Positions 33,065 through 64,000 of a DNA stretch of 64,000 nucleotides are shown one piece after another. Origin of the DNA: Phallusia mammillata (taxonomy: Eukaryota); contig OZ281497.1 in NCBI GenBank assembly GCA_965637545.1, positions 9,052,001-9,116,000 of the forward strand, given 5' to 3'. The position numbers and the translations under genes were made by a program. Below the pieces are notes generated by a model, which made no database searches, was not told where the DNA came from, and worked only from the letters and a program-made list of their open reading frames with translations. Position 1 is the stretch's first letter. Every line of letters starts with the position of its first letter.

Positions 33065-33790
33065 AGTGTAGAGTTAGTACATAAGGAGGGATAAATTGTC
33101 GCTTACCGTTGAGAAAGTTTGGTAAATGTGGCTGTTTTATCATTGTTGTTAAAATGGCATGGAAGGCTGCCAATAGTTTTCACATCAGTAATAAACCAGT
33201 ATTTGACAAATATATTTACTTACGTTTTAGGCTAATGCCACGTGGCCCATTCCCCCACTTGCATTCAATGACATCTGACAGTTAAAATCTGAAAGTTCCC
33301 ATGAAAATGTTAATTGATTGACTGACTAATTCAATAGACACAAGGAGGGACTTTATCTTCAGGTATCAACTCACTCTCCCGTCACGTTGTAACGATACTC
33401 AATACGTTAGTGCGTTTTCGTCATATAACAACCTTATATCGATAAACTGTCCTTACAGTTATTTAAATTATTAATGATTGTTTATGAAAAACCGTTTCTC
33501 GAATGGCAAGATAACAATATTATTGCCCTTTCCTGTGTTTTTCCTGCGGACGCCCATGATTTCTTCTGTGTATTCTGATTAATGTGATTATATAGTTAAA
33601 CTGTATGCTGCTGATAATGGATTTAGAAAATTGGATTATCCACAAATTACGTATGACCTCCAGAAAGGCTCTTTATGCTTATTCTTCGTCAACTGAAATG
33701 TTCATTCTGTTTACAACAGACTATTCAGTAACTTATACAGGGCTTCGAATGTCGTATAGAAGCGTGTATAACCCTTACTTAAGGACTAAG
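33065..33790 (+). pseudogene. Inverted, internally deleted remnant of a VIT-CUB gene
   Basis: 33065-33120 matches the reverse complement of the upstream region at ~50890-50935. 33230-33300 matches the exon-2 start (ANATWPIPP..AFNDI). 33345-33440 and 33640-33790 match parts of the terminal CUB (FIFRYQLTLPSRCNDTQY; MFILFTTDYSVTYTGLRMSYRSVYNP). Confidence 0.8.
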
Positions 33791-37700: not shown

Positions 37701-37917
37701 AATCGTTGCCGATTGCGAAGCCGCATTGGGCCTGGCAAGACCTACTCTTCCATTTCACTGTGCGCCATCAATATTTTTCAATGCACCTGGTCGATTTTTT
37801 CTGTTAAAAGCAGATGCAAGGCGCAACAAGTTGTTTGGCCTTGCACTAACGCTTTGCAACGTGCAAAAAGTTTTCATTACGAATGGATTATATCAAAACC
37901 TTTTCAATACATTTTAA
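34732..37917 (+). CDS. Intronless 1061-aa protein: N-terminal helical region, GlnD/GlnE(DUF294)-like nucleotidyltransferase, helical substrate-binding domain, C-terminal TPR array
   Basis: Uninterrupted 3186-bp ORF. Pol-beta-type signature FALMGMGSLARKEITPYSDFESIIVL. DUF294_C/GlnD-like helical module VDIKRVAYR...IVDKLRERRII...LQFSLSVGCEIRLRNY. Several TPR-like units (ARAWVDSGKFKKALKYYRK; IGDCYKKLRRNKKALKYLKLA; IGSCLTGLKNYEEALVYLNRS; LGSSLLKRQCIEEAINCYK). Domain calls are by motif recognition only. Confidence 0.8.
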   Translation: MLCETVLANELKKQCLSNGVEINPKESAKTLHQLGLVYKEKSPDKISLIQSVALMTSAALRQPDNVHEVRTDLNTLCLHILDLAKASKQDITLFDNAISEAKREIAKLRVTTQREIEKLKPINDDLKGPKLTRIRKQRVQHIRKIQDYVSETYTKIMQHIAKNTVDIMGKPPCQFALMGMGSLARKEITPYSDFESIIVLEERNGTSKQVLTNKYLAIPCLNNPLVPEEDWFYDAYTPCGICPDGLAPQASKNPLGRQTKTKKKPWTTELIKPVSQMVKYFDTAEDLKNGYHLADMLTTTCFVFGNYVVYHDFENKVHKKINNLPMFSQKAVETMQKDFEQYLLPNCRTHFTVDIKRVAYRSCSLFIIGLGHLHDCKFSNCFQIVDKLRERRIIDTALHGKLQFSLSVGCEIRLRNYNQASSQSDILHQTINLNISSCINNMATCIGPRALVDGLAIAKSLQMYVMSCFTVCSRLDPSLIVERSIGAAEFASSMKLHRLTIKLIHECKDIDECKNEKIQVLLLLWLAFSLHGCEEYKKCVKLVKANLKNMKQNGLINAACRLMMTCARAWVDSGKFKKALKYYRKVNFYLFFKLANSVTKLQINIGIGDCYKKLRRNKKALKYLKLAYNEVKDDFKNHAVGDEYYELMMHYSICLYRGGKFNEGKRVNEELLKARRSLHVDEESDLVINFACLGIGSCLTGLKNYEEALVYLNRSWRCKCIREDFCQDTSVTCVRLTAQCLTNLGRSFEAISFIAAYLNSSKSETTVLGQFFNICGLMNILWRCGFYEACILDNNYRIFALMPMRQTKHTRKRIDILRRQNQDLQQIIDHYDQHRIDDETKEIFKKEPKVEILHLLRLGSSLLKRQCIEEAINCYKMIEILLLKVEIGPFMSKDVEFHSMVYHEISYSLIMQRYGRRSIRYSKKAFHLSFHTRGPRFVDTCVDAAVMLAESLYCLKLFTESMDAAWHAVRLCLHVYPNCSFISKFMHAVIIVADCEAALGLARPTLPFHCAPSIFFNAPGRFFLLKADARRNKLFGLALTLCNVQKVFITNGLYQNLFNTF

Positions 37918-39187: not shown

Positions 39188-41124
39188 CTACACGCTATTA
39201 GTGTGGTTAATTTCCAGGTCTGTCATTTCATCGCATCCCATTGGCTCGTTGGTCACCAATTCGTGAAAACATTTTCTTGCCAAACTTTTTCGAGCGTTGT
39301 AAATTAAAAACGAAACCATTTGTAGTAAAGGTTGTACAATCACACCCAAAAGGGTAATTATACCTATAGTCAATCCGGGATTACTACGCCAATCTAATAT
39401 GGGATAAATCGCTGAAATAACGCCAGCAAGATGAAGCATAAGACTAAAAAACGCGTATGCAAGGCCAAACGCAATTCCATGAATGACATGCAGTAATCTA
39501 ACGGTCAAGGAGCCGACAAACAAGTCGGCTATCAAAACCAAAATATTAACCAAGTGCAAGTGTATGGACAGAGGATGAAAAGCGAAAGCAGGAGGCAGAA
39601 GTCCTGCCAGTAAAGACCAAAATATAACGTCAACTATTATTGAAAACGTAAATGAGCAGTTGAAGAGTACCCACGTCACCTTGTGAAACCACTGAAGGTT
39701 TTGATTTCCTGTAAAATCAGACGGTTTAGTAAAAAAAATAACAAGTCGACCTGAAGTGGAAAGTGTATTCAACTTGTTCCAAGGTTTAACTTTTTACAAC
39801 CTTACATTTACTGTCGATAGGCTCAATTACTTAATTACTCTAGCTTTGTCTATTAAAGATATTTTAAGCAAAAGGTCAAAACCCAACCATAATGTGCATA
39901 CTGTTTTTTTTTATTCAAAACACATACTTTTTTGATGTGTCCTCTTTTCCAACCTGTCTTGCAGTACCTCGTGTATTGTTATACTTAACGACATTGTAAA
40001 GTACAGAATGGTCAGAACTTCGACCCAATTAGTGAGATAATAAATAAAATGGTAGTCTTTAACATAATTGCTTGCGGTCGCGTCAACAACTTGCCAAATC
40101 AGCCATCCAAGCATGTACAGCAAAAGAAAGAGTCGAAATATAATGAAAAATCTGTTGCTGAGTCCCCACTAAAACACAAAAAGGTTAAAAAAGCATATAA
40201 AACAAGAATTGTGTTTTAACACAATACGTTTGTTTTCAGTTTTTTATATGCTATTTAAGGTGTGGGGTTAAACAAGGGTGTGTGAAAAACAAAATGGCGA
40301 AGTAGGTCAAAAACATGATGCGCAAGAGAAAGTATTGCTGAACATTTGCTAGAATGGCTGTTTAATTCTTGCAGTAGGCTTAGTTAGCACTTTTGAACAT
40401 GTACATCTATATCACCGGAAATACAGTGAATAAAACATGCAGGTAGATATCAAATACATAACTGATTCAAACACCTTTATGTGCAGCGCAAAAAGTATGA
40501 TAGTGGTTTTTTTTTTGAGAAAGTATGTCGTGTTAGTTAAGAGTAATAGTCTGTGTTTCCGGTTTACCAAAAAATCGTGTAAGGCGAAAGTTTTAGGTCC
40601 AATTAACTGGCACGAGGGGCAAATCCCTCTGTCATGCACTTTTTAAATAAACGCTCTGTTGCTGTTGCGCTCACAAGAATCTTTAAATTAACAAAAATAT
40701 GCTAATTATGACTTTTGACCAAAGTAACTGCTGTCAATTCGAGTGAAATCATCCATACTTGCAACGTTGTCTAGTCCTAGTACAAAAGGCGAATATCGCT
40801 AGAAATCATTTTTTTGTAGGCTACGTGTTTGTCCGAAGTTCGAAATGCACCGATAGCAAAGTGCGCTAGTTTTTTATTGGTTTCTTTTTTTAGTTCTCCC
40901 AGTTCCAAACCAATTCAACGGTTTGCTTTAAGCTGTTTACTTTTTCGTTTGACGCTACTGTCGAAATGATACTTGGTTTCTTTTAGCCCAAGGCAAACCA
41001 ATACCAACTGACAATGCAAACTATTCTATTCATTACTCACTTGTGACTTGTAAAAGTATTTTCGTTCGCTTCCCTTGAAGCCAAAATTTTGCAACCGAAA
41101 CTCGTTATTCAATTGAAAGCACAT
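39188..41124 (-). CDS. Protein rolling stone-like / FAR-17a-AIG1-type multipass membrane protein (exons 41041-41124, 39928-40168, 39188-39708; 281 aa)
   Basis: Spliced product MCFQLNNEFRLQNFGFKG...FYKSQWG...YLTNW...WFHKVTWVLFN...VIFWSLL...HLHLVN...RLLH...IYPILDW has about six hydrophobic segments and rolling-stone-type motifs; splice phases 0 and 1 are compatible. Confidence 0.8.
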
Positions 41125-42017: not shown

Positions 42018-43830
42018 CGGTGCGGCTAACGGCACAATGCTTTACAAACTTAGGAAGATCCTTTGATGCAATTAGCTTCATTGCAGCACATTTAAAGAGC
42101 AGCAAGAGTGAAACCACTGTCTTGGGCCAATTCTGTAATATTAGCGGACTCATGGACATCTTGCGACGGTGCGGTTTTTATGAAGCATGTATTTTAAATA
42201 TCAACAATAGAATATGTCCTTTAATGCCAATGAAACAAACCAAACACACCCGGAAGAGACTAGATACTCTCCAGCGACAAAATCGAGATTTTCAGCAAAT
42301 GATTGACCATTACGACCAACATCATATTGATGATGAAACAAAGGAAACATTTCAAAAGGTACCTAAGGTTGAAATACTTCATCTGCTTAGACTGGGAAGT
42401 AGTCTTTTGAAACGTCAATGCATTGAAGCGGCAATGAATCGTTACAAAAACATCGAAAATATTCTTTCAAAGGTTGAAATTGGACCTTTTATGTCGGACG
42501 ATGTTAAGTTTCATAGTATGGTTTATCATGAAATTTCATACTCCCTCATCATGCAGCGCTACGGCCACAGAGCAATAAAGTATTCAAAAAAGGCCTTCCA
42601 TCTTTCTTTTCATACACGTGGACCACGATTTGAAGACACCTGTGTTGACGCTGCGGTTATGCTTGCTGAAAATTTGTATAGTTTGGAACTCCTTACAGAA
42701 AGTCTAGTTTCTACACGGCATGCTGTCAGGTTGTGTCTACATGTGTATCCCAACTGCAGTTTTATTTCGAAATTTATGACAGCGGTAATTATCGTTGCTG
42801 ATTGCGAAGCCGCATTGGGTATGGCAAGACCTACACTTCCATCACATTGTGCGCCGTCGATATTTTTCAATGCACCTGGTTGATTTTTCACGTTAAAAGC
42901 AGATGTAAAGCTCAAAAAGGCGTTTGGCCTTTCACTAACACCTTGCAAAGTGCAAAAAGTTTTCATTACAAATGGATTAGATCAATACCTTTTCAATAGA
43001 TTCTAGCAACAGCTAGAAAGGCAAAGTAAAGACCAACTTTTTGCAACATTCGTAGAATTCAAATCATTTTGCAAATTTTTTTGAACGAAAGCGTTGTGCT
43101 GCATTAAACTTAAGTTGAAAGGTTTGCAATTTAAAAAAAATAGTATAAAATCCCCTTAAAGAACTTGACATTTTTTAATCAAACAAAAACTTTTGGTATT
43201 TAGTTTTTTAAGTTTATTTTTTCGTCATATACTTTAATCGTTTCCCGCGCTGTGGTATTGGCTGTGATCTTTTACTAAATCTAATCAATAACTATTAAAC
43301 ATTATAAAATCATTTCTGACTATGACATATTCCAATTTGAAGTTGTTGTTTTTGCAAATGCTTCTGTGTAGCTATTTAGCAATACTACGTCTAGTCTCCT
43401 ATACTGCTAGATGCTGACTTCGAATGCGTCCTTTTTTCACGGGCTTTTTTATGGACTGCGAATCCCCGTCTGTGTTTTTTGTTTGTTCCTGGTAATTTCG
43501 TACAGAACAGCATTCTTGTGATGCTTTAGTCTGGTTGCTCTGAAGCGCCACCATCCGTTTGGGATTGTTTAAATTATTTGTTTATGATTAATGACATACA
43601 TGCCGGACCAACTGAATGCATAGTTTTTATCTGAACTCTGCTGAAGCTCTTTTAATTTAAAAATTTATGTTCATATAAACGTGTTCGCAACCGGTTTCTG
43701 TAATTTGTCACATTATCTGTAATTTCTAAAATTTTATTCAAGTCGGTGACAACAAAGATCTACAGACATTTCAAGTGTGTGTTGCGTTTTTGACACAGGT
43801 TACTTTGGTAAAGTGGTTTGTTGTGGAGCA
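42018..43830 (+). pseudogene. 3' fragment of an NTase-TPR paralogue plus its 3' flank
   Basis: 42018-42990 aligns to 36930-37917 with a premature stop (CGA>TGA, 42881-42883). 42990-43830 aligns to 37918-~38790. It begins abruptly after a MITE fragment at ~41930-42017. Confidence 0.92.
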
Positions 43831-44129: not shown

Positions 44130-45330
44130 TTTCGCCAGTTTTGCAACGATAAAAACATATACCATAATGCATCATTAACTCATAATACTCATCACTAACT
44201 GCATTATGTTTAATATCATGTTTGACTTCATCGTAAGCTTGTTTTAAATACTTCAATGCTTTCTTGTGGCTCCATATTTTTTATAACAGTCGCCAATGCC
44301 AAAGTTAATCTGCAGTTTTTGCATCAGAATTTGCAAGTTTAAAAAAATGATAAAAATTCACTTTTCTGTAATATTTCAGGGCTTTCTTGAATTACCTGGA
44401 ATCCACCAAACAGCGAGCGCAGGTCATCATTAGTAGGCATGCTGCGTTAACTAGGCCATTTTGTTTCATATTTTGAAGGTTTGCTTTAATGAGTTTTACA
44501 CACTTTTTTTATTTCTCACAGGAATGTAACTAAATGCTAACAAATATAGCAAACTTGATTTGTTTTGTTCTTATTTTCATCGATATCCCTACATTCATGG
44601 ATTAACCTAGTAAATCGATGCAACTTCATTAAACCGGCAAACTCTGCTGCAACAATTTGTCTTTCAACAATAAAACTGGGTTCGTAACGAGTACACACTG
44701 TAAAACGTGACATAACATACATATGTAATGATTTTACAATCCATCTACCAAAGCTCTTGGGCCAATACATGTCGTCATGTTGTGGATACTGTATGAAATG
44801 TTAAGATTTATTGTTTAAAGTAAAATGTCGTTTTGACTGGAAGCTTGGTTGTAAATTCTCAAACGCATTTCGCATCCAACTGATAATAAAAACTGCAATT
44901 TCCCATGAAGTGTCAATGATACCTCGTTCACGCAGTTTATCAACAATCTGAAAACAGTTTGAAAACTTGCTGTCATGCAAATGTCCAATAATGAAAAGTG
45001 AACAGCTTTTGAAAGCAAAACGTTTAATATTCAAAGCATGACCTACAGCTACTTGCCGCCGAATACTGTTTCGAATCATTTCTTTCGAAGACAGTTTCTT
45101 CTGCCTTTTCAGTAAATATTGGCAAATTATTAGTTTTATTTTCAAAGTCTTTATATACCACATAATTTCAATTAAGTCTTAATTAAGTAATTGGTCGTCA
45201 GCAGATCAGCGAAGTGATAACCGTTCTTAAGATCATGATCCGTATCTAAGTACTTTACCATCTGAGAGACTGGTTTGATAAGTTCGGTGATCTGAGGTTT
45301 TTTCTTTGTCATTGATTGTCTAATCGTAAT
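44130..45330 (-). pseudogene. Frameshifted middle fragment of an NTase-TPR paralogue
   Basis: The reverse strand reads TKKKPQITELIKPVSQMVKYLDTDHDLKNGYHFADLLTT, then SCSLFIIG..LHDSKFSNCFQIV, GCEMRLRIYNQASSQ and YLKQAYDEVK...YYELMMHYGICFYR. It matches ~35510-36710 with many indels. Confidence 0.88.
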
Positions 45331-47330: not shown

Positions 47331-48069
47331 TGTCCTCGTGTGGTTATTGTCAACAAACAAGTTTGACTTATGACATTCTGATGCAAGAGGGTTGTTTACT
47401 TACATGTCGAATCTGGCGATATACGTACTTATTCCAATGTGTGTATTTCCAGTAGGCGGGGCGTTACTGGTTGGGTATGGGCCATGCTCTAATCGTTTGC
47501 AGTCCAGATATACTCGAATTCACACTCTTTTGCGTTAAGCTGCAGTTTCACCCTTCTCTATGATTGTGCAGAATGCTAAAAATAGACAAGAGCAAGTGCC
47601 ACTTAACAGTGTTGAGCAATAGATGTCTGGCAGGACAATCTTAGATTATATATTTTTTCCTTTTTTAGACTTAATTACGACAAATAAAATCCCGGGCTTG
47701 GCCACAATTTGAGTTAAAATCCATACACCGATTAAAACACTGACTGTAAAATGATTTATGTATTTCTTTTTTTATATTTTTATTTGTTTTGAATATGACA
47801 TACCAAGAATGTTCCTTTAAGAAAAAAAAACAAATTTAAGAAAAAAACTAACAACACAAACAATTCATGATTGCGTTTCGTTTATTTAGCGACCAAGCAA
47901 AATTTAACCATCTTATATTATTCAATTCACAAATATAAGTTATAAACCAATATAAACCAACCAGAAACCAACACACAGAAACATCAACCGTCAAATAACA
48001 AGTGGATAATTTGTACTAATGCCACAAAGCAATTACGACCAAAATTAATGTGAAAACAACTGTTTTGAC

Positions 48070-50782
48070 TTAGTTCTTTCGTGTAGGGTTATACACGCTT
48101 TTATACGATATTTGAAAACCTGTATAAGTCACTGATCCATCGGTTGTAAATACAATAAACATGTCAGTTGTCGACGAATAAACGTAAGAGCCTGCCTGGG
48201 GGTCAAACGAAATTTGTGGATAATCCAAAGAAGAACCATCAAAAACCATCAGATGATCGAAACCACCTTCTATATCCATATCAGCAACGTACAGTTCAAT
48301 TATATTATCATAAGGAGATTGAATACTCCAAGTGGAACAAAGATTATTTGAATAACTGTAAGGGTAGTTTATCGATGTAAAGTTGTTATATGACGAATAC
48401 GCATAAAGGTATTGAGTATTATCATTACAGCTTGGCGGGAGAGTGAGTTGGTTTCCAAAATTAAAGCCCATCCTTGTTTGTGACGAATCAGTCACTAAAT
48501 TAATATTTATGTATCGAGAAACAATTGGATCGGTAGGATAGCTACTCCCAGTAAAGGTAAGTGTACCATTATCCGTATTAATATAAACATAATCATAGTT
48601 GTACTCTAAATCAAGATCTATAATTTCCAGTGAAATGAAAAGATTGCAATTACTCCTTAAATACCACCAGCAATCAATATTGTTATAATATTGGCCGGGA
48701 TAGTTTGGAGAGGATAGGTAAGAGTATTGACCCGCTTGTGGATACAAATACTCCGAATTACATGTTTCATTAGTAATCGATTGGAGACTATATGTAAAGT
48801 TAAAACCCCTTCGCGTTACGGAACTGTCACTTTCAAAGTGAATCATCATATATCCCGTGGCAAAAAATTGACCATTTGTGATATCTGATCCAGTTAAAGT
48901 TGCAATAATGTTGCTTTGGTTGAAGAGATAAACATTATCCCAGCCATGTTCTATATCAAAATCACTAATTTCCAATATTATTACTTGATCGGAAGAATAA
49001 GAATAGATATACCACCAACAGTCAGCATTATCATAGTACTGGTTTGGGTAATTTGGTGAAGACAAGTAATAATTGTTACCTATTTGTGGATATAAGTATT
49101 CATTGTCACAATGATTCACACTGGTCGAATCTAGGTGATACATAAAGTTAAAACCACGACTGGTCACGGAACCATCAGTTACAAAGTTAATCTGCATGTA
49201 ACTAACTGCGAAAAACTGGTCGTTGGTATAATTTGATCCAGTTAAAGTTTCAATAAGGTTACTTTGGTTGTACAGATTAACATAATCGTAGTGGTTTTCC
49301 AATTCAAAATCAATAACTTGCAATGTGATCAACTGATTGTATGAATAAGAATAAATACGCCACCAACAATCAATGTTGTTGGAATACTCGTCAGGATAGT
49401 TGGGAGAAGGCAAGTAATAGTATTGACCCGTTTGTGGATAGAAATATTCGTCACCACAGGTTTCACTATCTCCAGAACCAGTTGTGTCAGTGATCACCTC
49501 AGCAGTTGTTGTTACAACGGGAAAAGTTTCGGTTGTTGAGCTAATAACACCAACCGAATTACTTACACTTGCCCTAAAACCAGTTTTTGATCCAGAACAA
49601 TCAGAAGTCAAATGCAACGACATACTACTTCCAGTAGACTGGTAGATGGTCAAATTGTTCTGATCGGTTAATGTACCAGATAAAATGGCAATAACTGGAC
49701 CGTGAAATGAGTTACCGTCATAGATGGTGAGTCGGTCGCAGCATTCCTCGATGTCGATATCGACGATATTAAGTTGAACAACATCATTGTCGGGGACACG
49801 AACCAACCACGCGATGTCAGCAGAGTTCGGGTACGGTTGAGGATAATTTGGAGAAAATATTTCACCCACCAAATTCTCAACAGTGGAGCCGTAAAGATCA
49901 AATAGCACCTGAGCTCTGTTTTGTATCTTCACATCGGAGTCGATCATGTCTTGCACGGTTTCCTTGTACTCGATGTTGAAGGTGACCTCCTTGTTGCCTT
50001 TGATGTGGACTGTGTTCTTTGCAGTTTGAATGTCAACGTTGAAATCACCTGTAAAATGCACAACGTAAGTAAACACAACGTGAGTAAACCAATGGCGATG
50101 CGATCTAGCAACAAAATTAACTCATTTTGTGTCCAAAAAATCAAAATGGAGTTACAAAAAACATTAAGGTAATAGCTGACCTAAACGTTTTTCCGAATGC
50201 ATGGCAGCCACGTGATCATTCCTCTTTGCATTTTGAAGCACCTCTTGCGCCTCCTTGTGGTTGGTTTTTCTTCCCTTGTACGCCACTCCCTCGGTGTGCA
50301 TTGTAAACGACGTCATCTCTGCGTAGTCGGGGAGGTAAGTGTGAAATCCGACGTCATCGGCTGTTTCACCATTGTTCATGATTGTGACCTTCAGATTTTG
50401 AATGTCATTGAATGCAGGTGGTGGAATGGGCCACGTGACATTTGCCTGAAACATAAGTAAAATATATTTCCATTTTAACCCATAATCAGCAAAAAGACTA
50501 AGCAAAACGTAACCTATTTCAAATGTCCAGCGTACTAATAAACAAACAATTGTAGAACCAATATCATTTAAAACAAACATGGAAGCAATCTAATAAGATA
50601 AACGGGCGACAAAATTTCTAAGCTTTATGACTAAAAATGAATAAAATAATTTCACATACTTTTTCGTAGATTGGTTGGGGCAGAAGTCCAATGACGAAAG
50701 CTTCATCGTCTTTTGTCGCATCGCCGAAGCTGGTCAAAGCCCACAGAAAAAATATGACAGTAGACAATTTGTAACAAAGCAT
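48070..50782 (-). CDS. Secreted VIT + 5x CUB domain protein (exons 50660-50782, 50181-50445, 48070-50048; 788 aa)
   Basis: Signal peptide MLCYKLSTVIFFLWALTSFG. VIT-like LKVTIMNNGETADDVGFHTYLPDYAEMTSFTMHTEGVAYKG...EAQEVLQNA...VTFNIEYKE. Five CUB units (SPNYP..Y..N.DC.W...ELE..YD.V...TDGSVT..GF). Splice phases 0 and 1 are consistent. No transmembrane segment. Confidence 0.88.
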
Positions 50783-52975: not shown

Positions 52976-55058
52976 TTTGAAACTTAGTTGGGTTACGTTA
53001 GAGGGATCAGCGGAAACAAACAACTTCACTGTTAAATGAAAGCAAGCCATACAATATATGGCCCTACCTTATACCTGTTAAAATGGAAACCGACTTGATT
53101 GTCCTGCTAACAAAAAAAACCACTCGATGTCAGCAAAGATAACACTATGCTTAAAAAAGTTTTCACCCAATATTGAAGGCCGAATTTTAAGAGATTGTTC
53201 AATTGAAACTTCCCCAAAATAAAAGGTAATATTTTTTTACTTGACATAACTGTGAGCTATTCATGTGTTGCAACATCTTTTTCAGGTGTTTTGCGTGATT
53301 TTTATACTAAACCAAACAGAAGTACGCGACCAGTTCTTGACTTTTATATTTACGACCAGTGAGTCTGGCACCGTTTAAAGCAAAAGTATTTTTCCGCTTT
53401 TTGCGTTGATAAATATAACCAGCCTAGAAAACTGCTTGCATCCAAAATACTGGTCTTAAAAGCTATACTCAGAAAGTATCATCAATATTTTTAGGCTTGA
53501 AAATTTTATGCATTCCGTATTAAACTCTTTCATGCAGCTTGAATGACTTACCAACGAGGGCGGCCTAGATTTTTTCTAATACCTCAAAACGCGACTTACG
53601 ATCAAATAAATAAGTTGATGTGCTATCAAATAAAAATAAACTTTGATTTTCATAATTCCCTTACACTCGTGACGCCATAAAACGTTTTACCTACAGTTCT
53701 GTTACATTTATGCATAAAACCAGACGGCGATTTCCTTTTTAGCACGATTGGTGATTCTTTGGGTTACGTAAGGAAACAAACTTTTTACTGAAACAAAATA
53801 ACAAAATTTAACTAAATCATAAAAATACAGACCGACAAACCAAACCCGGGTTTTATTGATGACCAAGTAAAAACAGCACAATAACACCACGAAATACACA
53901 GTTTACACCGACTTCAACAAGTGAACTCAGCACACCTTCCCACTACTTTGTACACCGGCAAAGTTATCACACACAAAATTACATGCAACATAAACATCAA
54001 GTTGCGAGGCCAAATCAACCGAAATTAATGTTTAGTTTAAATGTTACAACAATTATATCATATAAATCGATAAAATAATTGAAAACCTTTATCAGGTACT
54101 GTCCCATCTGTAATAAATGCAATAAACATGTCGGTTGACGTCGAATTAAGGTAAGAGCCTATCGGTGGATCAGCAGAAATTAGTGGAGAACTCGTAGACG
54201 GGCCATCAAATAACGAAAGATGGTCACAACATCTTTCCAATGCAATATCAGCAACGTAAATTTGAACCATATAACCATAATACGGAGAATGAATGCTCCA
54301 AGTAGTGCAAACGTCATTCAGGTAGTCGTTAGGATAATTAATAGATGTAATGCTGTTATAATAGGAAGAGGCATTTAAGTGGTGAGTATCGTTACAATTT
54401 GCAGGAACAGTCAATCGGTACCTAAAATTGAAGCCCCTACTTGTGTTACGCAATTATTTCGGCAGCTTTGGGAATTCGGCTAAAAGATCTTTCAAGTGGC
54501 GATGTTAAATTCCAATCAACCCCTTAAACCTAATTCTATACCTTAAAATCAAAACTGCCTCCCTAATTCGGAAACGGCCCGAACCCTGCAATAACGGCTC
54601 ACCACTAAGCCAAAGAAAGACCACAAACTGGTTTCACTAATGGGCGCCTTGTTTAAATACAGCGATAAAAAGCCTTCACATAAAACAACTCCGAATTCGA
54701 CAAGTTTCGCTACAAGTCAACGCCAGCAATACACGACACAAAACAACACGGTGTTACTCGCACGGCGCCCAGAGGAAGACTGACCATGCTTCCTTCTCAA
54801 GCACGTTTTACCACATGCACCAATCACGTTGATAACGTACAAGGGTGAACATGCAAACGGCACATATGAGGCGAACGTATAAAACACAGGAAAAGCATCA
54901 TGTGTAACAAGAACCATTTAGTGAATATACTGTTGTGTGAGAATAATACGCAAAACAATTAGGTGAATAAATGAGTGGCGAAACATAACAACGATTAAAC
55001 AAAACAATTAAGTGAATAAATGCGTGGCGAAACATAACAGCGATTATACAGACTAAAC

Positions 55059-55707: not shown

Positions 55708-56571
55708 CAGGGGCGGGCAACATACGGCCCGCGGGCCGGATCCGGCCCGCGACGGGATTTTGAGCGGCCCGCAGACAGTTACCGGTCTTACATGATAGTT
55801 TGGCCCGCGGCCACAGTCTGTCGCAATTCCCCACTACTTGCTTACTACGTCAAATTATAGTTGTAACGGACAGTAACGCTCCCCAATAGCAAAAAACTTT
55901 CCCGCCGTTGTTACCATTAGTTGTAAAATTAATTTTTAAACATTTTGCATCCTAAACCAACCCTCTTTAACCGCTAAATAAATAATTCAGCTCTTTACGC
56001 CACTTATCGAAAATTAAGCACTTTTGTATCTCCTAGGAAGGCACCACGTCAGTAGCTCTACCGCCTGCTTTCAGGTAGAACTACTAACACTGTAATTTGG
56101 CTGGCCCCTGGTTAAAAATTGTTCGATAGGTGACGCAACGGAGCATAGGCGTTTATGGTGCTGACTCAGCAATTTGGGTATATGGCACCATAACCGCCTA
56201 TGCTCCGTTGCGCCACCTATCGAACAATTTTTAACCAGGGGCCAGCCAAATTACAGTGTTAGTGGTACTACCCTTCTTTCACGGTTTCCTTTGTTTCCAC
56301 ATGTGTAGCCTCGTTAGTGTTTCAGCAGTATCTAAGTCTGTGGTGTATGCATTAAATTTGCTGTGGTCAATAATTTTATGTTATATCAGTTAGATTGTTC
56401 GGACTGTATTGTAATTGTGACGTTCTTGACTGTATTTGGTTTAGGCGGTCAAAATTCCGTTGTAAATCACTGGATAAATACGCGATTAATGTATCGATTC
56501 AGGAATCCGGCCCGCCAAGTACTTCATTTTCCCATATCAGGCCCGCCGACTGAAGAAGTTGCCCGTCCCTG
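55708..56571. mobile_element. hAT-type MITE, 864 bp, inserted in the last codons of the Gypsy integrase
   Basis: TIRs CAGGGGCGGGCAAC / GTTGCCCGTCCCTG; TSD GTCTACAC. Removing it restores ...DGVDGCPTGVGPF* immediately before the PPT. Confidence 0.92.
56083..56263. repeat. Near-perfect palindrome: 79-bp arms, 23-bp spacer
   Basis: 56083-56161 is the reverse complement of 56185-56263 with 2 mismatches; weaker pairing extends to ~56074/56272. Confidence 0.95.
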
Positions 56572-59500
56572 GTCTACACCATCGTTTCCGGTGAATATCG
56601 CGCTGGTCGACGACGTACCCGAGTCGACCTTTCTGCACCCATCCGAGTTGCCCTGAGGATTCCACTCGGTTGTGTCTTCCTGTGAAACTACTTTAGGGTT
56701 GTAAACATACACGACTGCAGGCATTTCAGGTGGCGGTTGCGGATGTTCTAAAGGTTCTTGCGTGGGGCAGGGGAATGTACTCGTCGTTGGCTTTAGTCTG
56801 TTAAAATGTACAGTTTGCCTCTTGCCTGTCGCGTCTTCGATTACGTAATTCACAGGACCTCGAATATCGGTGATCCTGTATGGTCCCTTGTATGGATACT
56901 GAAGTTTTTTACTTTGTCCAATCGGGACGACCGGGTTTGTCAACAAAACAAATTCGCCTACCGAGTAGGGTCTTCCTTGTTGTCGTTGATTGTACCAGTC
57001 TTCCATCCGCTTCCGTTGCGTCGTAAGACTCTCTCTCACTACCTCTTCCGCAAGCTGTAGACCATCCCGAAGCTGGTCAATCTCCGCTCCATACGAATGC
57101 GTGGTGTCACGCGCCAAAGACCCCATCAAGTCTGCCGGCAATCGCAATGGTCGTCCGGTTAAGAGAGTATGCGGAGCTTCTCCCGTTGCATCGTGGGCAC
57201 TCGCGTTGTAGGCGGCCACCACTCCTGGTAATGCTTCGTCCCACCGCCGGTTATCTTGCTGTATATAATTTCGGATCATAGTGATAATGGTCTTATTGTT
57301 ACGTTCGACCCCACCGTTCCCAGGCGCGTGGTATGATGTCGTGCGACTTTTCTTACATCCCATTAGGCGTAATAATTCTGCGAACAAATGGCTTTCAAAA
57401 TTTGAACCGCGGTCGGAATGAACAGTCTCCGGTACCCCATGTACGGTGAACCAATTTCGATATAACAAACTGGCGGTCTCATTGGCAGTTTGATTTCGCA
57501 TCGGCCAGGCTCTTACGTATTTTGTGAAAATGTCACACGCTACCAAAATAAACTGGTAACCCGACCGGGTGAGAGGTAGAGGTCCGACAACGTCCACTTC
57601 GATCCTTTGCACGGGTCTGTCCTCCGTTGAGGGCATGAGCGGGGCTTGAAAATGATGCGTGGGTCTTTTATTGTATTGACAGGTGACGCAGTTGCGGCAA
57701 AAGGTCTCGACAGAATCGCGCCATTTATACCAATAAAAGCGTTCCGCTATCTTAGCCAGCGTCTTAGCTATGCCCAAATGCCCTCCCCCGTGTACGTTAT
57801 CATGAAGATTTGACATTGCTTCATCGACTAAACTCTGTGGCAAAACAATTACAGAATCACTGCCTAGTGTAGAGTTTCCACGACAACAAAGTACACCTGC
57901 TTTAAGCAGGAGGCTGGCAAAGCGAGACCAATAATGGCGAAGTACTGGTGATTCTTTTTTAACGGTTTTGAATTTCGGGCGCATACCTTTATTCAACCAT
58001 TCCAAGACAACTGCTAGATCAGGGTCATCTTTCTGCCGCTCCAACAAGTCCTCATGTTGATATCCTACCGTAGACTTTAAGTCAACGACGTGAACTTGGG
58101 TATCTTCGATACCCTCGGCCAATTTGTATGGGCATGCCCCGCAATCTTCTATGTCATCAAGGCGTGACAGAGCGTCTGCATTCCTATGTTTGCTTCCCGA
58201 CCTGTGATGGATTTCAAAGTCATACGCGGATAGTGCTCTACCCAGCGGGCGCACTGCCCGTATAACTCTTTAGACTTCCAAAGCCACCTTGACGAAGAAT
58301 GGTCGGTCCGTAAGGTAAATTTTTGACCCAGTAAGTAACACCGGTACAGCTTTGTCGCAAATATTACGGTCAAAAGCTCTTTTCTCGTGGTGGAATAGTT
58401 ACGTTCCGACCTGCTCAAAGTGCGACTACCATAGGCGACCACGCATTCCTTACCGTCGATTTCCTGAGAAAGGACACAGCCAACGGCAGCGTCAGACGCA
58501 TCCGTATCCAGTATAAACGGCATGTTAAAGTCAGGGTATCGAAGAATTGGTGCAGTCGTCAAGTGTTGTTTTAGTTGAGAGAAGGCATCCTGACTCTGGT
58601 CATCCCACTGAAATCGTCTTCCCTTTTCCGTCAACCGGTGAAGAGGACCCGCGATCTGTGCGTAACCGCAAATAAATTTACGATAGTAGGAAGTAAGGCC
58701 TAGAAACTGCCGGATTTCTTTTACGTTGCGGGGGGTCGGCCACTTAGCAACTGCCTTTATTTTGTTAGGGTCGCATCGTATGCCCTCTTTCGATAATACG
58801 TGGCCCAAAAAGTCTACTTCGTGTTTAAATAGAGTGCACTTGCTAGGTTTTAAAGTTAGACCAACCGATTTGATTCTTGTTAGCACGTCCGACAGTCGCT
58901 TTAAATGCTCTTCGAAAGTTTTCGAGTATACAATGATATCATCCAAGTACGCTAGGGCTCCCTGCCATTCGATTCCGTTCAGGACAATACGCATCAGGCG
59001 CTGAAAAGTCGCTGCAGAATTGCACAGGCCCATGGGCATTACATTAAATTCAAAAAGTCCGACGTGGCTAGTGAAAGCCGTTTTCTCCCGGGAAGAGGCA
59101 TCCATTGCAACCTGCCAATACCCGGATTTTAGATCCAAAGTTGAAAAATAGGCGGCGTTGGACATTTGGTCTAAACTCTAAACTGTCATCTATCCGGGGA
59201 ATCTGGTAGCTATTTTTTTTAGTTAACTCATTCAACTTGCGGTAATCAACGCAAAAACGAGTCTCACCGGATTTCTTTCGGACCAACACAATCGGGCTGC
59301 TCCACGGTGATTTCGAAGGTCGGATTAGGCCTTGTCTGTCCATTTCAGCTAAGATCTCCTCTACCTTTGCTTTGTTGTGATGAGGCATGCGACGCGGTGG
59401 CTGTCTTACAGGGCCGTTGTCACCCGTGTCGATAACATGACGCACTATATCAGTGCGCCCCAAGACATCTTTGGAAGTCGAAAACGCTTGTTGATTGGCA

Positions 59501-62500
59501 CGCAGCAAATCGAACAATTCACCTCGTTGATCTGCCGTTAATCGGTCACCGATGGTGACTTTGTCTACAATGTCCTGAAACGGATCTTGGTTAGATATTT
59601 TCTGGGCCGACACGGAACAAATCTGGGTGTCTGTAACAAAACACTCAGGGTGTTTACATCCAGGGACACCTCCCTCTATACAAGTACCCGGGATTTTGCA
59701 ATCGAGGTTACCAAAAGCATACACAGGGGTAACCGTAGCGAATCTCGCCCCACTTGGTATTGTTACATCATCATCCCCCAAATTTGCCACAAACACCTTC
59801 ACCTCGCGGCTTTGCGCCATCGTTACACTTGTCGCAGTCAATAACCCAAATCTCCCCACGAACCCAGCTATCTGCTCCGTTAGAACCGGAGTGGCCAACT
59901 CTTGTGAATTAAGAGATTCTTGACATAAGCTGCCTGTTACACATACCTCTGCGAACGCTGGGACAAGGACGTCATCCGCAACACATACGTCACAGGGTTG
60001 GGACAAGGCTGTCGGAGAACTAAAGAGCGGAAGTCTGGCGTTTCCTGCCGTTAGAGTATTTTCCCTGTAGCAGATTCGGCACGCATTGGCCTGCAGAAAA
60101 TCCAATCCTAGAATAAAATCATGGTTGAGGTTCCTAATCATTTTGGGGCGCATACCCAGGTGTGGACAGTCGCGTCGAAAATGACCTGGCTGCCCGCAAC
60201 CGTAGCACTTGCGTTTTTGCTCGTGTTTGCCATAAAAATGTCCTGTCCTTTTAAGGGAATCTACTTCAGCTTGCAGAGTCTTCAAAGTGTCCTCGAATTT
60301 AGCACTCCGTTCCGCCGTACGGCGCTCCATGTCTTCAAGTTTTTTTCAAAATTACCTCCATTTCCGACGATTCTTTGTACTCGATGTTGAAAGTGACCTT
60401 GTTTCTTTCATTATGTATATCACTGATGGGAAATATTTTTAATAGTGGGCAATAGAAGGGATTGAAAGTAATCTGCTAGGCTTTCAGTTGAGAAATGATC
60501 GTTTGTGTGAAGGTACTATTAGCCTTTTTTGACTTTAGTCCCTTTCATTGATATTCATAGACACTAAAGACGCTTTTTTAGTGAAATATATTTGTTCTCA
60601 ATAAGATTGTTAATTGATTTTACCCTGAAATAAACTTTTCCCAACTGGTTATGAACCATCAATCTCATATCATTAACCAAGACTTATTTCTACTGAACTG
60701 AAAGATTCTGCTTATACAAACCCATCGGATTAAAAGCTGAAACGTATTGTGAAACAAATTAATTAGTGTCCCTTTCCAGATCATTTTGAATTCTGAGACG
60801 AAAACACACAAAAAATATTTCTACTCACTTTTTCGTAGATTGGTTTGGGAAAAAGTCCAATCACAAATAACTTACTTCGACGCGTCTTTCGTCGCATCAC
60901 CATATCAAAGTCCCAAGAAAATATATAAAAGCTAGAAACTCGTAACGTAGCATTGTGAAACGGCTTCGGCTGAAAGTGTTTTGTAAATCATATTTTAGTA
61001 AACGTCCCCAGCAAGAAAACGTAATATTAATATTTGTGTACATTGTCGGATCTGTAACCCTTACGACGCATTTTTTGTTGATGCTCCACTAACCGTAAGT
61101 TTTAACAACAAAAGTACGTTCTTCTCTTTTCAAAATTCACTGTTAAGTTATTGTTTTCAGAATTGGATAGGTTACTTGATCCCAAATATTACACTTGCTC
61201 AGTGGTAAACCACAAATAACTATATCACTTATACTAAGCCCGAAACAACCAATGTATATGTGATTTTACGCATATTTTGACAATCCTCAGGTCGTTTTGC
61301 GTTTAAATAGCCACAAACAGGTCGTCGTGGGAAGCAACATCTTGTAACACTTCACCATTTGTCAGGTTCGCACCATGTAATTATAAGAAATGGTCAAAAT
61401 ATATTTTCGAATTTTTTATCGTAGAACAAACTCGATACCGATGCTTCTGAAGTGAATAGCGTTAAAGTCTACCAATCAATTTGTTTACAAGCAATACTTT
61501 GTAGCTATACTGACGAGTTTTTACCTTTTTAAAGAGCACTAAAAATTGCCGACGCTGTGAGAATCGTCAACAAAGTAAAATTACTTGTACTTTTTGATGC
61601 TCTTTGTCTCCTATGGTGACGTTCTCTTGGAAAAAAATTACAAATATGTGTATTAAGCCAATTTTGCTTTATTTGTGTTCATCTTTTTTCAACACGACTT
61701 TAAGCTGGTTCCAAACACGGAACAATGCCATTTGAATTAAAAAAAAACGATTTATCCGCGTATGAAGTTAAACCATGATATTGTGGTTGTCTTGGGTACA
61801 TACAAATTGTCAACTTAAGATAACCAGAATTTCCTACTTCGACACTTCGACACTTCGACGCCAAATTGCCCCCAAACAAACTTTTCAACAGGCGTTTGTC
61901 TTCCCATGCAATGACTTTAAAGTTCACCAACCCTGAAATGCACTTTTAACACAGCCAAAGGTATCAACCTTAATTGAGTTTAAGGAATCCAATAGCTAAT
62001 ATTGTCAAGGTTGTTTTCATGGCACCCACAGCAAACAATCTGATAGACATGCACGTCAATAAACAATTAATCCCTGCCCATTTTCAGACAATTTGCTTTC
62101 AAGTTTTCGCAAATACTCTATGCGCCGTAGCTCTACCACAGTTCGTACTGCTTACAATCGAGGGCGACTTATATCATTTTTACCACCTCAACATGCGGTT
62201 TTTGAGCAAGGGCGATTAGTAATCGAGAGTGGCTTAATTAGAATCGAGTAAATACAGTAATTGCCTAATTCAATTTTAAACTTTGATTTCATGTTTCCCT
62301 TAGACTAGTGGTGTTGGGTTCTCACGCCCTTGTGGGGTCTGGTGTTGTCATAAAAACATTAGAATTATGTAACGAACAGTTCTGTCAAGTTTTGTTGATC
62401 AAGCCCGACGGAGATCCCCTTTTTTGTCAAGTTTCGTTTTACGCCGGGTGACATTAAAAGCAAACTTTGCATAAGGAGCAAAACAAAAAAATTTACTCTA

Positions 62501-62748: not shown

Positions 62749-64000
62749 TCATATAAACCTATACATTAAATCAAAACCTTTATCAGTTACTGAACCATCT
62801 GTCATGAATGCAATAAACATGTCAGTTGACGTTGAATTAAGGTAAGAGCCTATCGGTGGATTGGCAGAAATTCGTGGGGAGCTCGTAGACAGGCCATCAA
62901 ACAATAAAAGATAGTCGCAACAGTCTTCTAATGCAATATCAGCAACGTAAATTTCAACCATATAGCCATAATACGGAGCATGAATGCTCCAAGTAGTGCA
63001 AATGTCATTTAGGTAGTTGTTGGGATAATTAATGGATGTAAAGCTGTTATAATAGGAAGAGGCATTTAGGTGCTGAGTATCGTTACAACTTGCCGGGAGA
63101 GTCAATTGGTAAATGAAATTAAAGCCGCTACTTGTTACTATTTGATCAGTCACTAAATTTATATGTATGAAGCGGGATACAAATGGTTCGGTTGGATAAC
63201 TACTCCCAGTTAGGTTTGTTGTGCCTTTATCCGTAAATATTGTAACAAAATCATAATTGTATTCTAAGTCGAGATCGACAATTTCCAATGATACCCAAAG
63301 GCCGTAGCTCCCATAGATATACCACCAGCAATCAATATTGTTATAATATTGGTCGGGATAGTTTGGCGAGGATACGTAATAATATTGACCAATTTGTGGA
63401 TACAAATACTCCCAATTACAAGTTTCATTGCGAAGCGAATCAGTAGTGTTAGCAATTACACCGGGAACAGTTGTACCCATCACAGGAGTTGTTTCGTTTG
63501 CCGGAGCAATTTCAACATGATATGTAAAGTTAAAACCACGACTTGTTACAGTACCATCAGTGATAAACCGAATATTCATATAATCAATAGAAGTAACAGT
63601 TCCATTAGGGCGATCAGTACCGTACAAGGTCATACTAAAATCATAACCATATATTGCAACATAATCATAATAATTTTCTAAACTTATGTCAATTACATCC
63701 AATAAAATCAACTCATTGTAAGCATAGATATACCACCAGCAATAAATATCATTGTAATATTGACCGGGATAATTAGGAGATGACAAGTAATAGTATTGAC
63801 CCGTTTGTGGGTATAAATATTCATAGCCACAAGTTTCGTTGCCAGTTGTTTCGTTTGTTAAAGCACTTTCCACATAGTACATAAAGTTAAAACCACGGCT
63901 TGTTACAGAACCATCAGTAACAAAATTTATATCCATCCAATTTTTGGCAATAATCGTTTCATTCGGAGCACTGGTACCATACAAGCTGGTTAAAAGGCCG
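62749..64000 (-). CDS. Multi-CUB protein, 3' part (paralogue of 48070-50782; 5' end beyond window)
   Basis: The reading frame is open to the window edge. It holds one partial and three complete CUB units with Thr-rich linkers; the terminal CUB ends ...DKGFDLMYRFI*. Confidence 0.88.
   Translation of the reverse strand, partial: GLLTSLYGTSAPNETIIAKNWMDINFVTDGSVTSRGFNFMYYVESALTNETTGNETCGYEYLYPQTGQYYYLSSPNYPGQYYNDIYCWWYIYAYNELILLDVIDISLENYYDYVAIYGYDFSMTLYGTDRPNGTVTSIDYMNIRFITDGTVTSRGFNFTYHVEIAPANETTPVMGTTVPGVIANTTDSLRNETCNWEYLYPQIGQYYYVSSPNYPDQYYNNIDCWWYIYGSYGLWVSLEIVDLDLEYNYDFVTIFTDKGTTNLTGSSYPTEPFVSRFIHINLVTDQIVTSSGFNFIYQLTLPASCNDTQHLNASSYYNSFTSINYPNNYLNDICTTWSIHAPYYGYMVEIYVADIALEDCCDYLLLFDGLSTSSPRISANPPIGSYLNSTSTDMFIAFMTDGSVTDKGFDLMYRFI

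Follow-up and report, generated by a model that had tools for sequence, protein, structure and literature searches.

A divergent VIT domain joined directly to five CUB domains in a member of a multi-copy family of predicted tunicate proteins

The VIT domain is a widespread beta-sandwich, found in the inter-alpha-trypsin inhibitor heavy chains (ITIH1-6), VWA5A/B, PARP4 and bacterial VIT-vWA proteins, and to our knowledge no function of its own has been established for it. Indeed, VIT is nearly always interpreted jointly with the vWA domain after it. ITIH heavy chains become covalently attached to matrix. CUB domains, for their part, are arranged in tandem and carry Ca2+-site residues in cubilin, DMBT1/CUZD1, PCPE-1 and MASP/C1r/C1s; the CUB sites of cubilin, the MASPs/C1r/C1s and PCPE-1 bind Ca2+ and clamp a basic partner side chain. 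Cubilin consists of N-terminal EGF repeats and 27 CUBs, and DMBT1/CUZD1 carry SRCR and ZP domains.

In this report, we analyzed a gene of Phallusia mammillata, located in a stretch of 64,000 nt (the whole stretch is called the window hereafter), whose predicted product resembles both groups of proteins. Like the VIT-vWA proteins, it has a homologous VIT beta-sandwich at its N-terminus and is predicted to be secreted, but it is devoid of vWA/MIDAS, of ITI_HC_C and of the ester-linkage site for chondroitin sulphate/hyaluronan; in ITIH1, VIT is followed by vWA, whereas here it packs on a CUB, as judged from a model of the Ciona relative P0005. Like the multi-CUB binders, it has tandem CUBs with Ca2+-site residues, but only five of them, and no EGF, SRCR, ZP, NTR or protease domains. 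The predicted layout runs from a signal peptide, through a divergent VIT, an atypical CUB1 that would pack against VIT and a Ser/Thr-rich linker, to a CUB array - four domains after CUB1 in this protein - that appears to vary in number and sequence between copies. We consider it probable that the gene is intact and transcribed, that it belongs to a tunicate multigene family encoding secreted glycoproteins, and that its product acts as a Ca2+-dependent multivalent binder with a conserved head and a variable tail. Such a natural family, conserved in at least two ascidian orders, with its VIT separated from vWA and packed on CUB instead, would be a clean system for asking what the role of VIT itself is. 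Apart from this, it is a case of shuffling of two common extracellular modules; such domain shuffling is frequent in invertebrate deuterostomes.

The VIT-CUB gene consists of three exons on the minus strand (50782..48070), to which all coordinates below refer unless stated. Exon 1 (50660..50782, 41 amino acids) encodes Met and a hydrophobic signal-like start, probably cleaved after TSFG, followed by the first head strand, AFVIGLLPQPIYEK, whose counterpart in the Ciona and Clavelina proteins is AYVVGLFPEPVYE by alignment. Only one 19-mer of the protein is strongly hydrophobic (KD 1.55), and it lies in this exon; because there is no second hydrophobic segment, the protein, once exported, would stay soluble. 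Intron 1 (50446..50659, 214 nt, GT..AG, phase 0) is followed by exon 2 (50181..50445, 88 codons plus 1 nt), which encodes the VIT core, and intron 2 (50049..50180, 132 nt, GT..AG, phase 1) by exon 3 (48070..50048, 2 nt, 658 codons and the stop, in a single open frame), which encodes the end of VIT, CUB1, a Thr-rich linker and CUB2-5, with the stop codon at 48070-48072.

The gene is transcribed, as seen from RNA-like data in which intron 1 is spliced out. A contig over 50659-50780 in run X1 skips this intron exactly and joins exon 1 to exon 2 (joint 50445|50660, CT..AC on the plus strand), the RNA label of the runs holding it being a guess ('probable RNA run'). A second X1 contig ends at 50047, one base off the predicted start of exon 3. 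Coverage is very thin: X1 has two small contigs and X2 has one, some of them over exon 3, and none of the reads in the probable RNA runs bridges the exon 2-exon 3 joint. This joint rests on GT..AG borders, on reading phase and on the full-length proteins of Ciona and Clavelina, to which the two exon pieces align collinearly with no gap or overlap. The splicing proposed in an earlier note, made from the DNA sequence, was seen at the first joint, while the second is unbridged by reads.

The same note had proposed that VIT is fused directly to CUBs, with no vWA between them, and this stands independently of any splice, since a single exon encodes the end of VIT together with all five CUBs; the fusion is thus not an artefact of the gene model. 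Introns of 214 and 132 nt are moreover too short for a hidden domain such as vWA. In the window protein, Pfam gave no vWA match at E up to 1 and no match to SRCR, ZP or EGF; ITI_HC_C (PF06668) had no match either, and the protein ends just past CUB5.

Is the N-terminal module a VIT? The note had recognized VIT, by its peptide pattern, together with a signal peptide and five CUBs. The peptide strings it quoted are present in the exon translations, exon 1 has a hydrophobic signal-like start, five CUB stretches are found, and exon 2 alone matches Pfam VIT (PF08487) above the cut-off of 26.5 bits, with 33.5 bits (E 5e-8, profile positions 19-87). The C-terminal part of the head, from NTVHIKGNKEVTFNIEYKE to the start of CUB1 (49897..50046), corresponds to positions 106-155 of the family profile, and its columns align to ITIH4 and ITIH1 (…KITFELVYEELL). 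Relatives in other tunicates score 33.4 to 35.8 bits in two Clavelina proteins and 27 to 31 bits in five others, over profile positions 13/19 to 111. The VIT of the family is divergent: it reaches about 25 to 36 bits, where ITIH-type VITs score about 100 bits, and the match begins around profile position 19. Compared with solved structures, the family profile matches ITIH4 (9c4f, E 1.4e-6) and ITIH1 (6fpy, E 2.6e-4) over residues ~42-157, and hhalign aligns it with the VIT of an ITIH-like protein of Styela with a probability of 96.5% (E 8e-10). A word-index search with the Ciona VIT part returned only two Ciona proteins; being insensitive, it was replaced by an exhaustive profile search of 1.84 billion representatives. 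There, all seven out-of-family matches scanned with Pfam carry VIT, and five of the seven have vWA after it.

Structure models were made with AF2 from the Ciona relative P0005, not from the window protein. VIT with CUB1 was modelled at pLDDT 91 and pTM 0.88, and VIT alone at pLDDT 78.6 and pTM 0.72; the VIT part was refolded alone because CUB structures dominated the matches in a Foldseek search with the two-domain model. With the VIT model, the first seven rows of an ESM Atlas search are all VIT clusters (TM 0.57-0.67, rmsd 2.3-3.4 A, 116-133 residues). The PDB fold searches do not discriminate: ITIH1 is matched with E 0.02 and Z 5.2-5.3, among CBM3, Cna and CspB sandwiches, level with unrelated beta-sandwiches such as Cna collagen-binding domains and below Cnm at Z 6.8. 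This ranking, and Pfam scores that in most members barely exceed the cut-off and in one Clavelina member (25.0 bits) fall under it, are what one would expect if the module were a generic beta-sandwich, non-homologous to VIT and resembling it by chance or convergence. We regard this as highly improbable: independent sequence tests agree, all matching over the same ~110 columns, where motifs are shared (N…E..F…LP..A….FSM…G..Y.G…..EA… and ..TF.L.Y.E), and in the Atlas search other folds appear only under TM 0.5. Judged from these alignments and models, the N-terminal module is a true but divergent VIT domain.

Pfam CUB (PF00431) matches exon 3 in five stretches, with a total E of 1.1e-67: CUB1 (49567..49887), CUB2 (49129..49461), CUB3 (48781..49113), CUB4 (48445..48765) and CUB5 (48094..48432). 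Between CUB1 and CUB2 lies the Ser/Thr-rich linker (49462..49566), read from the sequence and matching no family, which is likely to be O-glycosylated; the protein also has eight N-glycosylation sequons. Among solved structures, the CUBs are related to those of cubilin, PCPE-1, MASP and neuropilin, the best match being cubilin CUB5-8 (3kq4, E 2e-53). The Ca2+-site columns Tyr/Glu/Asp/Asp/Ser are invariant in all five CUBs, so that the ligands are retained, as the note had held for Tyr, Glu and Asp, and they align with those of cubilin, PCPE-1, MASP and C1s CUBs; Tyr, Glu, Asp, Asp (and Ser) at these positions are the established ligands of Ca2+-binding CUB domains. The window protein nevertheless differs from the multi-CUB binders around these sites. 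The canonical four Cys, forming two disulfides, are absent: CUB2-5 keep the first pair only, with one extra Cys in CUB4, and the first pair is missing altogether from CUB1, which has a different pattern, a CC and one Cys past the third ligand Asp (EECCD…SDCS). In addition, compared with the cubilin CUBs aligned to it, the loop from Glu to Asp is short by four residues. With this short loop, and with the second disulfide missing in CUB2-5, the geometry of the site may differ.

By analogy with cubilin, MASPs/C1r/C1s and PCPE-1, each Tyr-Glu-Asp-Asp-Ser site may bind Ca2+ and grip a basic side chain of its partner, and binding through five consecutive sites would be multivalent and Ca2+-dependent. 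Binding of this type is likely to be the working principle of the VIT-CUB protein, and the function that we infer for it is Ca2+-dependent extracellular binding. The role of the VIT-CUB1 head would be to dock to a partner that is itself conserved, or to oligomerize, possibly via an unpaired Cys, and the fast-changing CUB tail would set ligand specificity.

The cysteines and tyrosines of the family would fit another role, structural or material, in which Tyr-rich CUBs and the odd Cys of CUB1 would cross-link into tunic, mucus net or egg coat through dityrosine, DOPA or halogenated Tyr and through disulfides, with the VIT head as an anchor, loosely like matrix-attached ITIH heavy chains. Tyr amounts to 9.7% in exon 3 and to 10.9-12.3% in the closest copies (P0001, P0003, P0004, P0005 and P0008), whereas other multi-CUB proteins have 2.5-8%; the Cys count is odd in six of seven full-length relatives, the CC…C triad of CUB1 is conserved in relatives, and the Ser/Thr-rich linker and the sequons would also fit. 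However, the more distant Clavelina copies have just 6-8% Tyr, and much of the Tyr belongs to the CUB core motif (NYP, YY) and may simply be structural. The cross-linking chemistry is pure inference, and our literature searches found no proteomic or expression evidence for it. A structural role of this kind therefore seems unlikely to us. We would also give little credence to its most specific form, namely a head whose unpaired Cys makes it a covalent docking or oligomerizing module, with Tyr-rich CUBs cross-linked by oxidation or halogenation into a tunicate-specific material such as tunic, endostyle mucus net or egg coat; if true, this would be the first VIT function outside the VIT-vWA context.

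How general is this layout? It is found in Ciona intestinalis (XP_026689840/XP_026689834, named 'DMBT1-like', and XP_078495680), in C. savignyi (H2YDJ1, a fragment) and in at least eight predicted proteins of Clavelina lepadiformis, for example XP_076805322 ('cubilin-like'), CAK8682023, XP_076809046 and XP_076809594. All are computer predictions, automatically named "DMBT1-like", "cubilin-like" or "tolloid-like". DMBT1-like is a misnomer because there is no SRCR or ZP, neither domain being found in the window protein or listed for the Ciona and Clavelina relatives; this name and 'cubilin-like' rest on CUB repeats alone. The earlier note knew of no family with this layout; databases do hold it, under wrong names, so that by sequence comparison the layout is unusual but not unique, being common to a multi-copy, misnamed family of Ciona and Clavelina. 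It is neither described nor widespread: it occurs in several ascidians, and our literature searches yielded no paper describing it. As the note proposed, the protein looks like a lineage-restricted extracellular one: it is predicted to be secreted, and all named family members are tunicates. The roles that the note suggested for it, in matrix, gamete or immune recognition, would be guesses. Pfam VIT was already precomputed on several Ciona and Clavelina relatives; what is new here is the compact VIT-CUB1 head, the Cys triad of CUB1, the Tyr content of the closest copies (10-12%), and the clustering of copies in tandem, decayed ones included. Correct naming of this multi-copy, fast-evolving, secreted tunicate family would prevent false inferences on SRCR-type mucosal immunity in ascidians.

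Common to the relatives in Ciona and Clavelina are a signal peptide, an A(F/Y)V(I/V)GL…P(I/V)YE strand and VIT, then a CUB1 that contains IEECCDRLTIYDG and SDC, a Ser/Thr/Pro linker and, after it, the CUB array. The window protein fits this pattern collinearly (signal peptide, AxVxGL…PxYE, VIT, CUB1 with EECCD/SDC, linker, CUBs), and its exon pieces score 133.8 and 58.8 bits with the family profile. Its head is 46-61% identical, and collinear, to those of the Ciona proteins and XP_076805322, and ~34-53% identical to those of more distant Clavelina copies; exon 2 has 52-55% identity to the Ciona and Clavelina heads, and CUB1 50-61% to the CUB1 of relatives. The tail CUBs have 33-48% identity to relatives, with best matches that are non-positional. 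The number of CUBs is five here and three to six in full-length VIT-bearing relatives, with seven or eight in calls of the last exon made from open reading frames only, and some Clavelina copies, unlike the window protein, have C-terminal non-CUB regions. These identities and the models show the VIT-CUB1 head as a compact, conserved unit, and the CUB tail that it sits on as fast-changing. No exons 1-2 were found within 10 kb upstream of the closest relative on metagenome contigs (L001, L002).

Two proteins of Styela clava were considered in addition. One, 'ITIH4-like isoform X4' (XP_039268562), likewise has VIT and CUB in one tunicate chain, but it keeps vWA (VIT 58-167, vWA 308-488, one CUB 886-996). 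Descent of the family from such an ITIH-like VIT-vWA-CUB protein was not retained: its CUB is 26-34% identical to the CUB1 of the family, as any CUB is, and its VIT is not the closest outgroup. Since neither domain shows special affinity, a direct parent-offspring relation is unsupported. The other, 'cubilin-like' XP_077965562, gave weak repeated matches to the profile of the head, which Pfam and hhalign did not confirm.

At the locus itself, copies are clustered in tandem, some of them decayed; in Clavelina, too, the family is multi-copy, and one contig there carries many of the copies. The 3' part of a tandem paralogue (62749..64000), whose CUB array runs off the window, is 53% identical to CUB3-5. 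A relic at 54061..54444 retains only the last CUB (53% identity to CUB5), with no CUB-like sequence upstream. Another, at 60829..60942, resembles exon 1, with signal peptide and first strand (tblastn 39%, E 2e-5; family profile E 0.002), and a scrambled one on the plus strand (33231..33775) consists of the start of exon 2, then pieces of the last CUB. A retrotransposon also lies in the cluster. In such surroundings, the copy studied here might itself be a decaying, functionless paralogue, or its VIT and CUB exons might belong to separate transcription units, and the relics, the retrotransposon, the thin RNA coverage and the unbridged exon 2-exon 3 joint would agree with this. Yet ~789 codons are open across the three exons in correct phases, and the five Ca2+-site motifs are intact. 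Contigs cover exon 3 as well as the spliced exon 1-exon 2, the last third of VIT shares an exon with CUB1, and the gene is collinear with full-length relatives from two further genera. Decay or separate transcription is thus very improbable, and the gene is probably intact. About 185 nt past its stop codon, a pattern match places a candidate poly(A) signal, AATAAA (47881..47886).

The VIT-CUB gene, read at 48070-50782 on the minus strand of the window, comprises three exons: exon 1 (50782..50660), which opens with an ATG and codes for MLCYKLSTVIFFLWALTSFG and then DATKDDEAFVIGLLPQPIYEK; exon 2 (50445..50181), with 88 residues running from ANVTW… to …SEKRL; and exon 3 (50048..48070), with 658 residues and a stop codon. 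Both introns (214 and 132 nt) have GT..AG ends and compatible phases (0 and 1), and an AATAAA lies about 185 nt downstream of the stop codon. Since the N-terminus is the sole strongly hydrophobic stretch of the protein, the product fits a predicted soluble protein with a predicted cleaved signal peptide.

Fragments of the gene occur in two small sequencing runs of the same species, X1 and X2, whose RNA label is a guess. Intron 1 is confirmed, because an X1 contig links 50445 to 50660, omitting exactly this intron (CT..AC ends on the plus strand). A second X1 contig spans 49679-50047, ending one base short of the predicted start of exon 3, and an X2 contig spans 49387-49591, also in exon 3. In X3, a large run, introns are covered just as exons are and the joined 50445-50660 form is absent; this run therefore behaves as genomic DNA. 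Intron 2 is a prediction, supported by sequence signals and collinearity with relatives.

Pfam searches were run on each exon translation separately rather than on a joined protein. Exon 2 alone matched VIT (PF08487) at 33.5 bits against a cut-off of 26.5, over profile positions 19-87, and exon 3 matched five CUB domains (E 1.1e-67); no vWA, SRCR, ZP or EGF domain was found in the exons of the gene. The last third of the VIT is encoded at the beginning of exon 3 (NTVHIKGNKEVTFNIEYKE…). Pfam extends its match in full-length relatives to position 111 through the exon-3-type stretch, and in the family profile these columns pair with …KITFELVYEELL in ITIH4 and ITIH1. As the VIT end and CUB1 lie in one exon, the fusion is independent of the predicted splices, and a vWA cannot hide in the two introns, since both are short. 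The direct joining of VIT to five CUBs without vWA, as first read by eye, is thus upheld.

The VIT call itself, also made by eye, was strengthened by several independent tests. Pfam VIT scored above cut-off in the Ciona and Clavelina proteins as well as in the window gene. Run against all solved structures, A1, a profile of the N-terminal head built from five relatives and the window pieces, matched only ITIH4 (E 1.4e-6) and ITIH1 (E 2.6e-4). The hhalign comparison of the head with a Styela ITIH-like protein's VIT gave a probability of 96.5% (E 8e-10). An exhaustive search for the head among 1.84 billion representatives returned 116 proteins at E <=0.001; the best 13 of these (E <=1e-10) were VIT-CUB family members or unnamed fragments, except for P0128, a beetle VIT-Kunitz-vWA protein (E 1.2e-13). 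All seven hits outside the family that were scanned with Pfam have a VIT, followed in five by a vWA. When the head of the Ciona relative was modelled with AlphaFold2 (pLDDT 78.6) and compared with the ESM Atlas, rows 1-7 were VIT clusters (TM 0.57-0.67, rmsd 2.3-3.4 A), ITIH3, ITIH4 and bacterial VIT-vWA among them, and non-VIT folds appeared only below TM 0.5. Comparison of the model with solved structures was not discriminating: ITIH1 (Z 5.2-5.3 over 111-112 residues) ranked level with other beta-sandwiches, and first place went to a Cna-type collagen-binding domain (Z 6.8). Given the agreement of Pfam, A1, hhalign, exhaustive search and Atlas, our conclusion is that the head is a genuine VIT, though a divergent one.

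The first matches of the exon 3 product are tunicate proteins, 34-36% identical over the full length. Relatives with the same head occur in Ciona intestinalis (XP_026689840/34, XP_078495680), C. savignyi (H2YDJ1, a fragment) and Clavelina lepadiformis (many proteins, several with consecutive accessions on one contig). Databases call them DMBT1-like, cubilin-like or tolloid-like, because of the CUB repeats alone, or 'unnamed'; SRCR, ZP and EGF domains are absent from all of them. Unnamed ENA/JGI ORFs (P0001, P0003 and others) each open with the VIT end encoded by exon 3, which suggests that they are the equivalent large final exon, annotated as one ORF. Among the 116 hits, VIT is combined with CUB only in this family and in one Styela ITIH4-like protein, which differs in its VIT-vWA-…-CUB order and has no special affinity to the family. 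A Styela 'cubilin-like' model gives hints of the head, unconfirmed. The family is thus demonstrated in Ciona (Phlebobranchia), Clavelina (Aplousobranchia) and Phallusia mammillata. The claim of a lineage-specific, unfamiliar layout therefore holds in that the architecture is real and lineage-restricted, and no published description was found in the literature searched; it falls short in that misnamed predictions are already public for Ciona and Clavelina. It is a new variant made from known modules, and its value lies chiefly in offering a natural system with VIT but no vWA. VIT is classically paired with vWA. The Styela clava ITIH4-like protein, P0198 (XP_039268562), has a C-terminal CUB in addition to VIT and vWA, and P0128 has five Kunitz domains besides VIT and vWA; in invertebrates, then, shuffling of VIT is freer than the textbook pairing implies.

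Compared with Ciona and the closest Clavelina protein, VIT (46-55% identity) and CUB1 (50-61%) are positionally matched, and CUB2-5 (33-48%) find their best matches at shifting positions. By these alignments the family has a conserved head and a variable tail, with 3 to 6 CUBs per full-length VIT-bearing relative and 7-8 in two ORF-only last-exon calls. Modelling of the Ciona relative predicts that VIT and CUB1 are a single structural unit (pLDDT 91.2, pTM 0.88, versus 78.6 and 0.72 for VIT by itself), with the strand encoded by exon 1 belonging to the sandwich.

Of the canonical CUB disulfides, CUB2-5 retain just the first. It is missing from CUB1, where the canonical disulfides are replaced by a triad, EECCD…SDCS (49597-49743, minus strand), in which an adjacent Cys pair and a third Cys, immediately after the third Ca2+-ligand Asp, flank the ligand residues. 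Kept in Ciona and most Clavelina copies, the triad makes the cysteine number of the mature protein odd, and six of the seven full-length relatives have an odd count for this reason; one thiol may be free or may form a bond between chains. Tyrosine makes up 9.7% of the exon 3 product, 10.9-12.3% of the closest relatives (P0001, P0003, P0004, P0005, P0008) and 6-8% of more distant Clavelina copies; other multi-CUB proteins have 2.5-8%, about half that of the closest copies.

The locus is a birth-and-death cluster. An intact paralogue (62749-64000+) is 53% identical over CUB3-5. Between an exon-1-like relic (60829-60942) and a lone last CUB (54061-54444) of a VIT-CUB paralogue sit minus-strand gypsy/Ty3-type ORFs (56524-60330; gag-protease, reverse transcriptase/RNase H, integrase), within a GC-rich block (0.48 versus about 0.36); this insertion may have disrupted that paralogue. 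On the opposite (plus) strand, a scrambled relic (33231-33775) joins 19 residues resembling the start of exon 2 (79% identity) directly to pieces of a last CUB. Many X3 variant contigs (90-99% identity) pile up on head-coding 49632-50015 and 50304-50399, which suggests several close head copies or divergent alleles in that individual; summed depth reaches about 2200 there, compared with about 150-280 in the flanks and over some of the tail, contig depth not being copy number.

The Ca2+ ligands that the earlier note saw retained are indeed in place: the Tyr/Glu/Asp/Asp/Ser columns are invariant in all five CUBs and line up with the corresponding columns of cubilin and PCPE-1 CUBs, and MASP and C1s CUBs are also significant matches. 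In CUBs of the cubilin-intrinsic factor, MASP-collectin and PCPE-procollagen type, Ca2+ is held and a basic residue of the partner is clamped. By analogy, each CUB here would hold Ca2+ and clamp such a residue, and five in series could bind multivalently; the conserved VIT-CUB1 head would serve a conserved docking or oligomerising function while the tail diversifies. An environment-facing or gamete-facing role fits the copy-number turnover and tail divergence. A live alternative, favoured by the high tyrosine content and the odd cysteine, is that the protein is a structural component of a cross-linked material.

The relic at 33231-33775 lies just upstream of a 1061-aa single-ORF gene (34732-37917, plus strand), itself from a second family that is locally duplicated and decayed, with two partial copies nearby: the C-terminal 287 aa (42020-42883, plus) and a short opposite-strand piece (44801-45163, minus). 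Other exon-like minus-strand ORFs, identified by eye and unconnected with the VIT-CUB gene, are a possible cohesin-SA-like piece (10192-10464), a sulfatase-like piece (24302-24643) and a multi-pass membrane protein (39188-39772).
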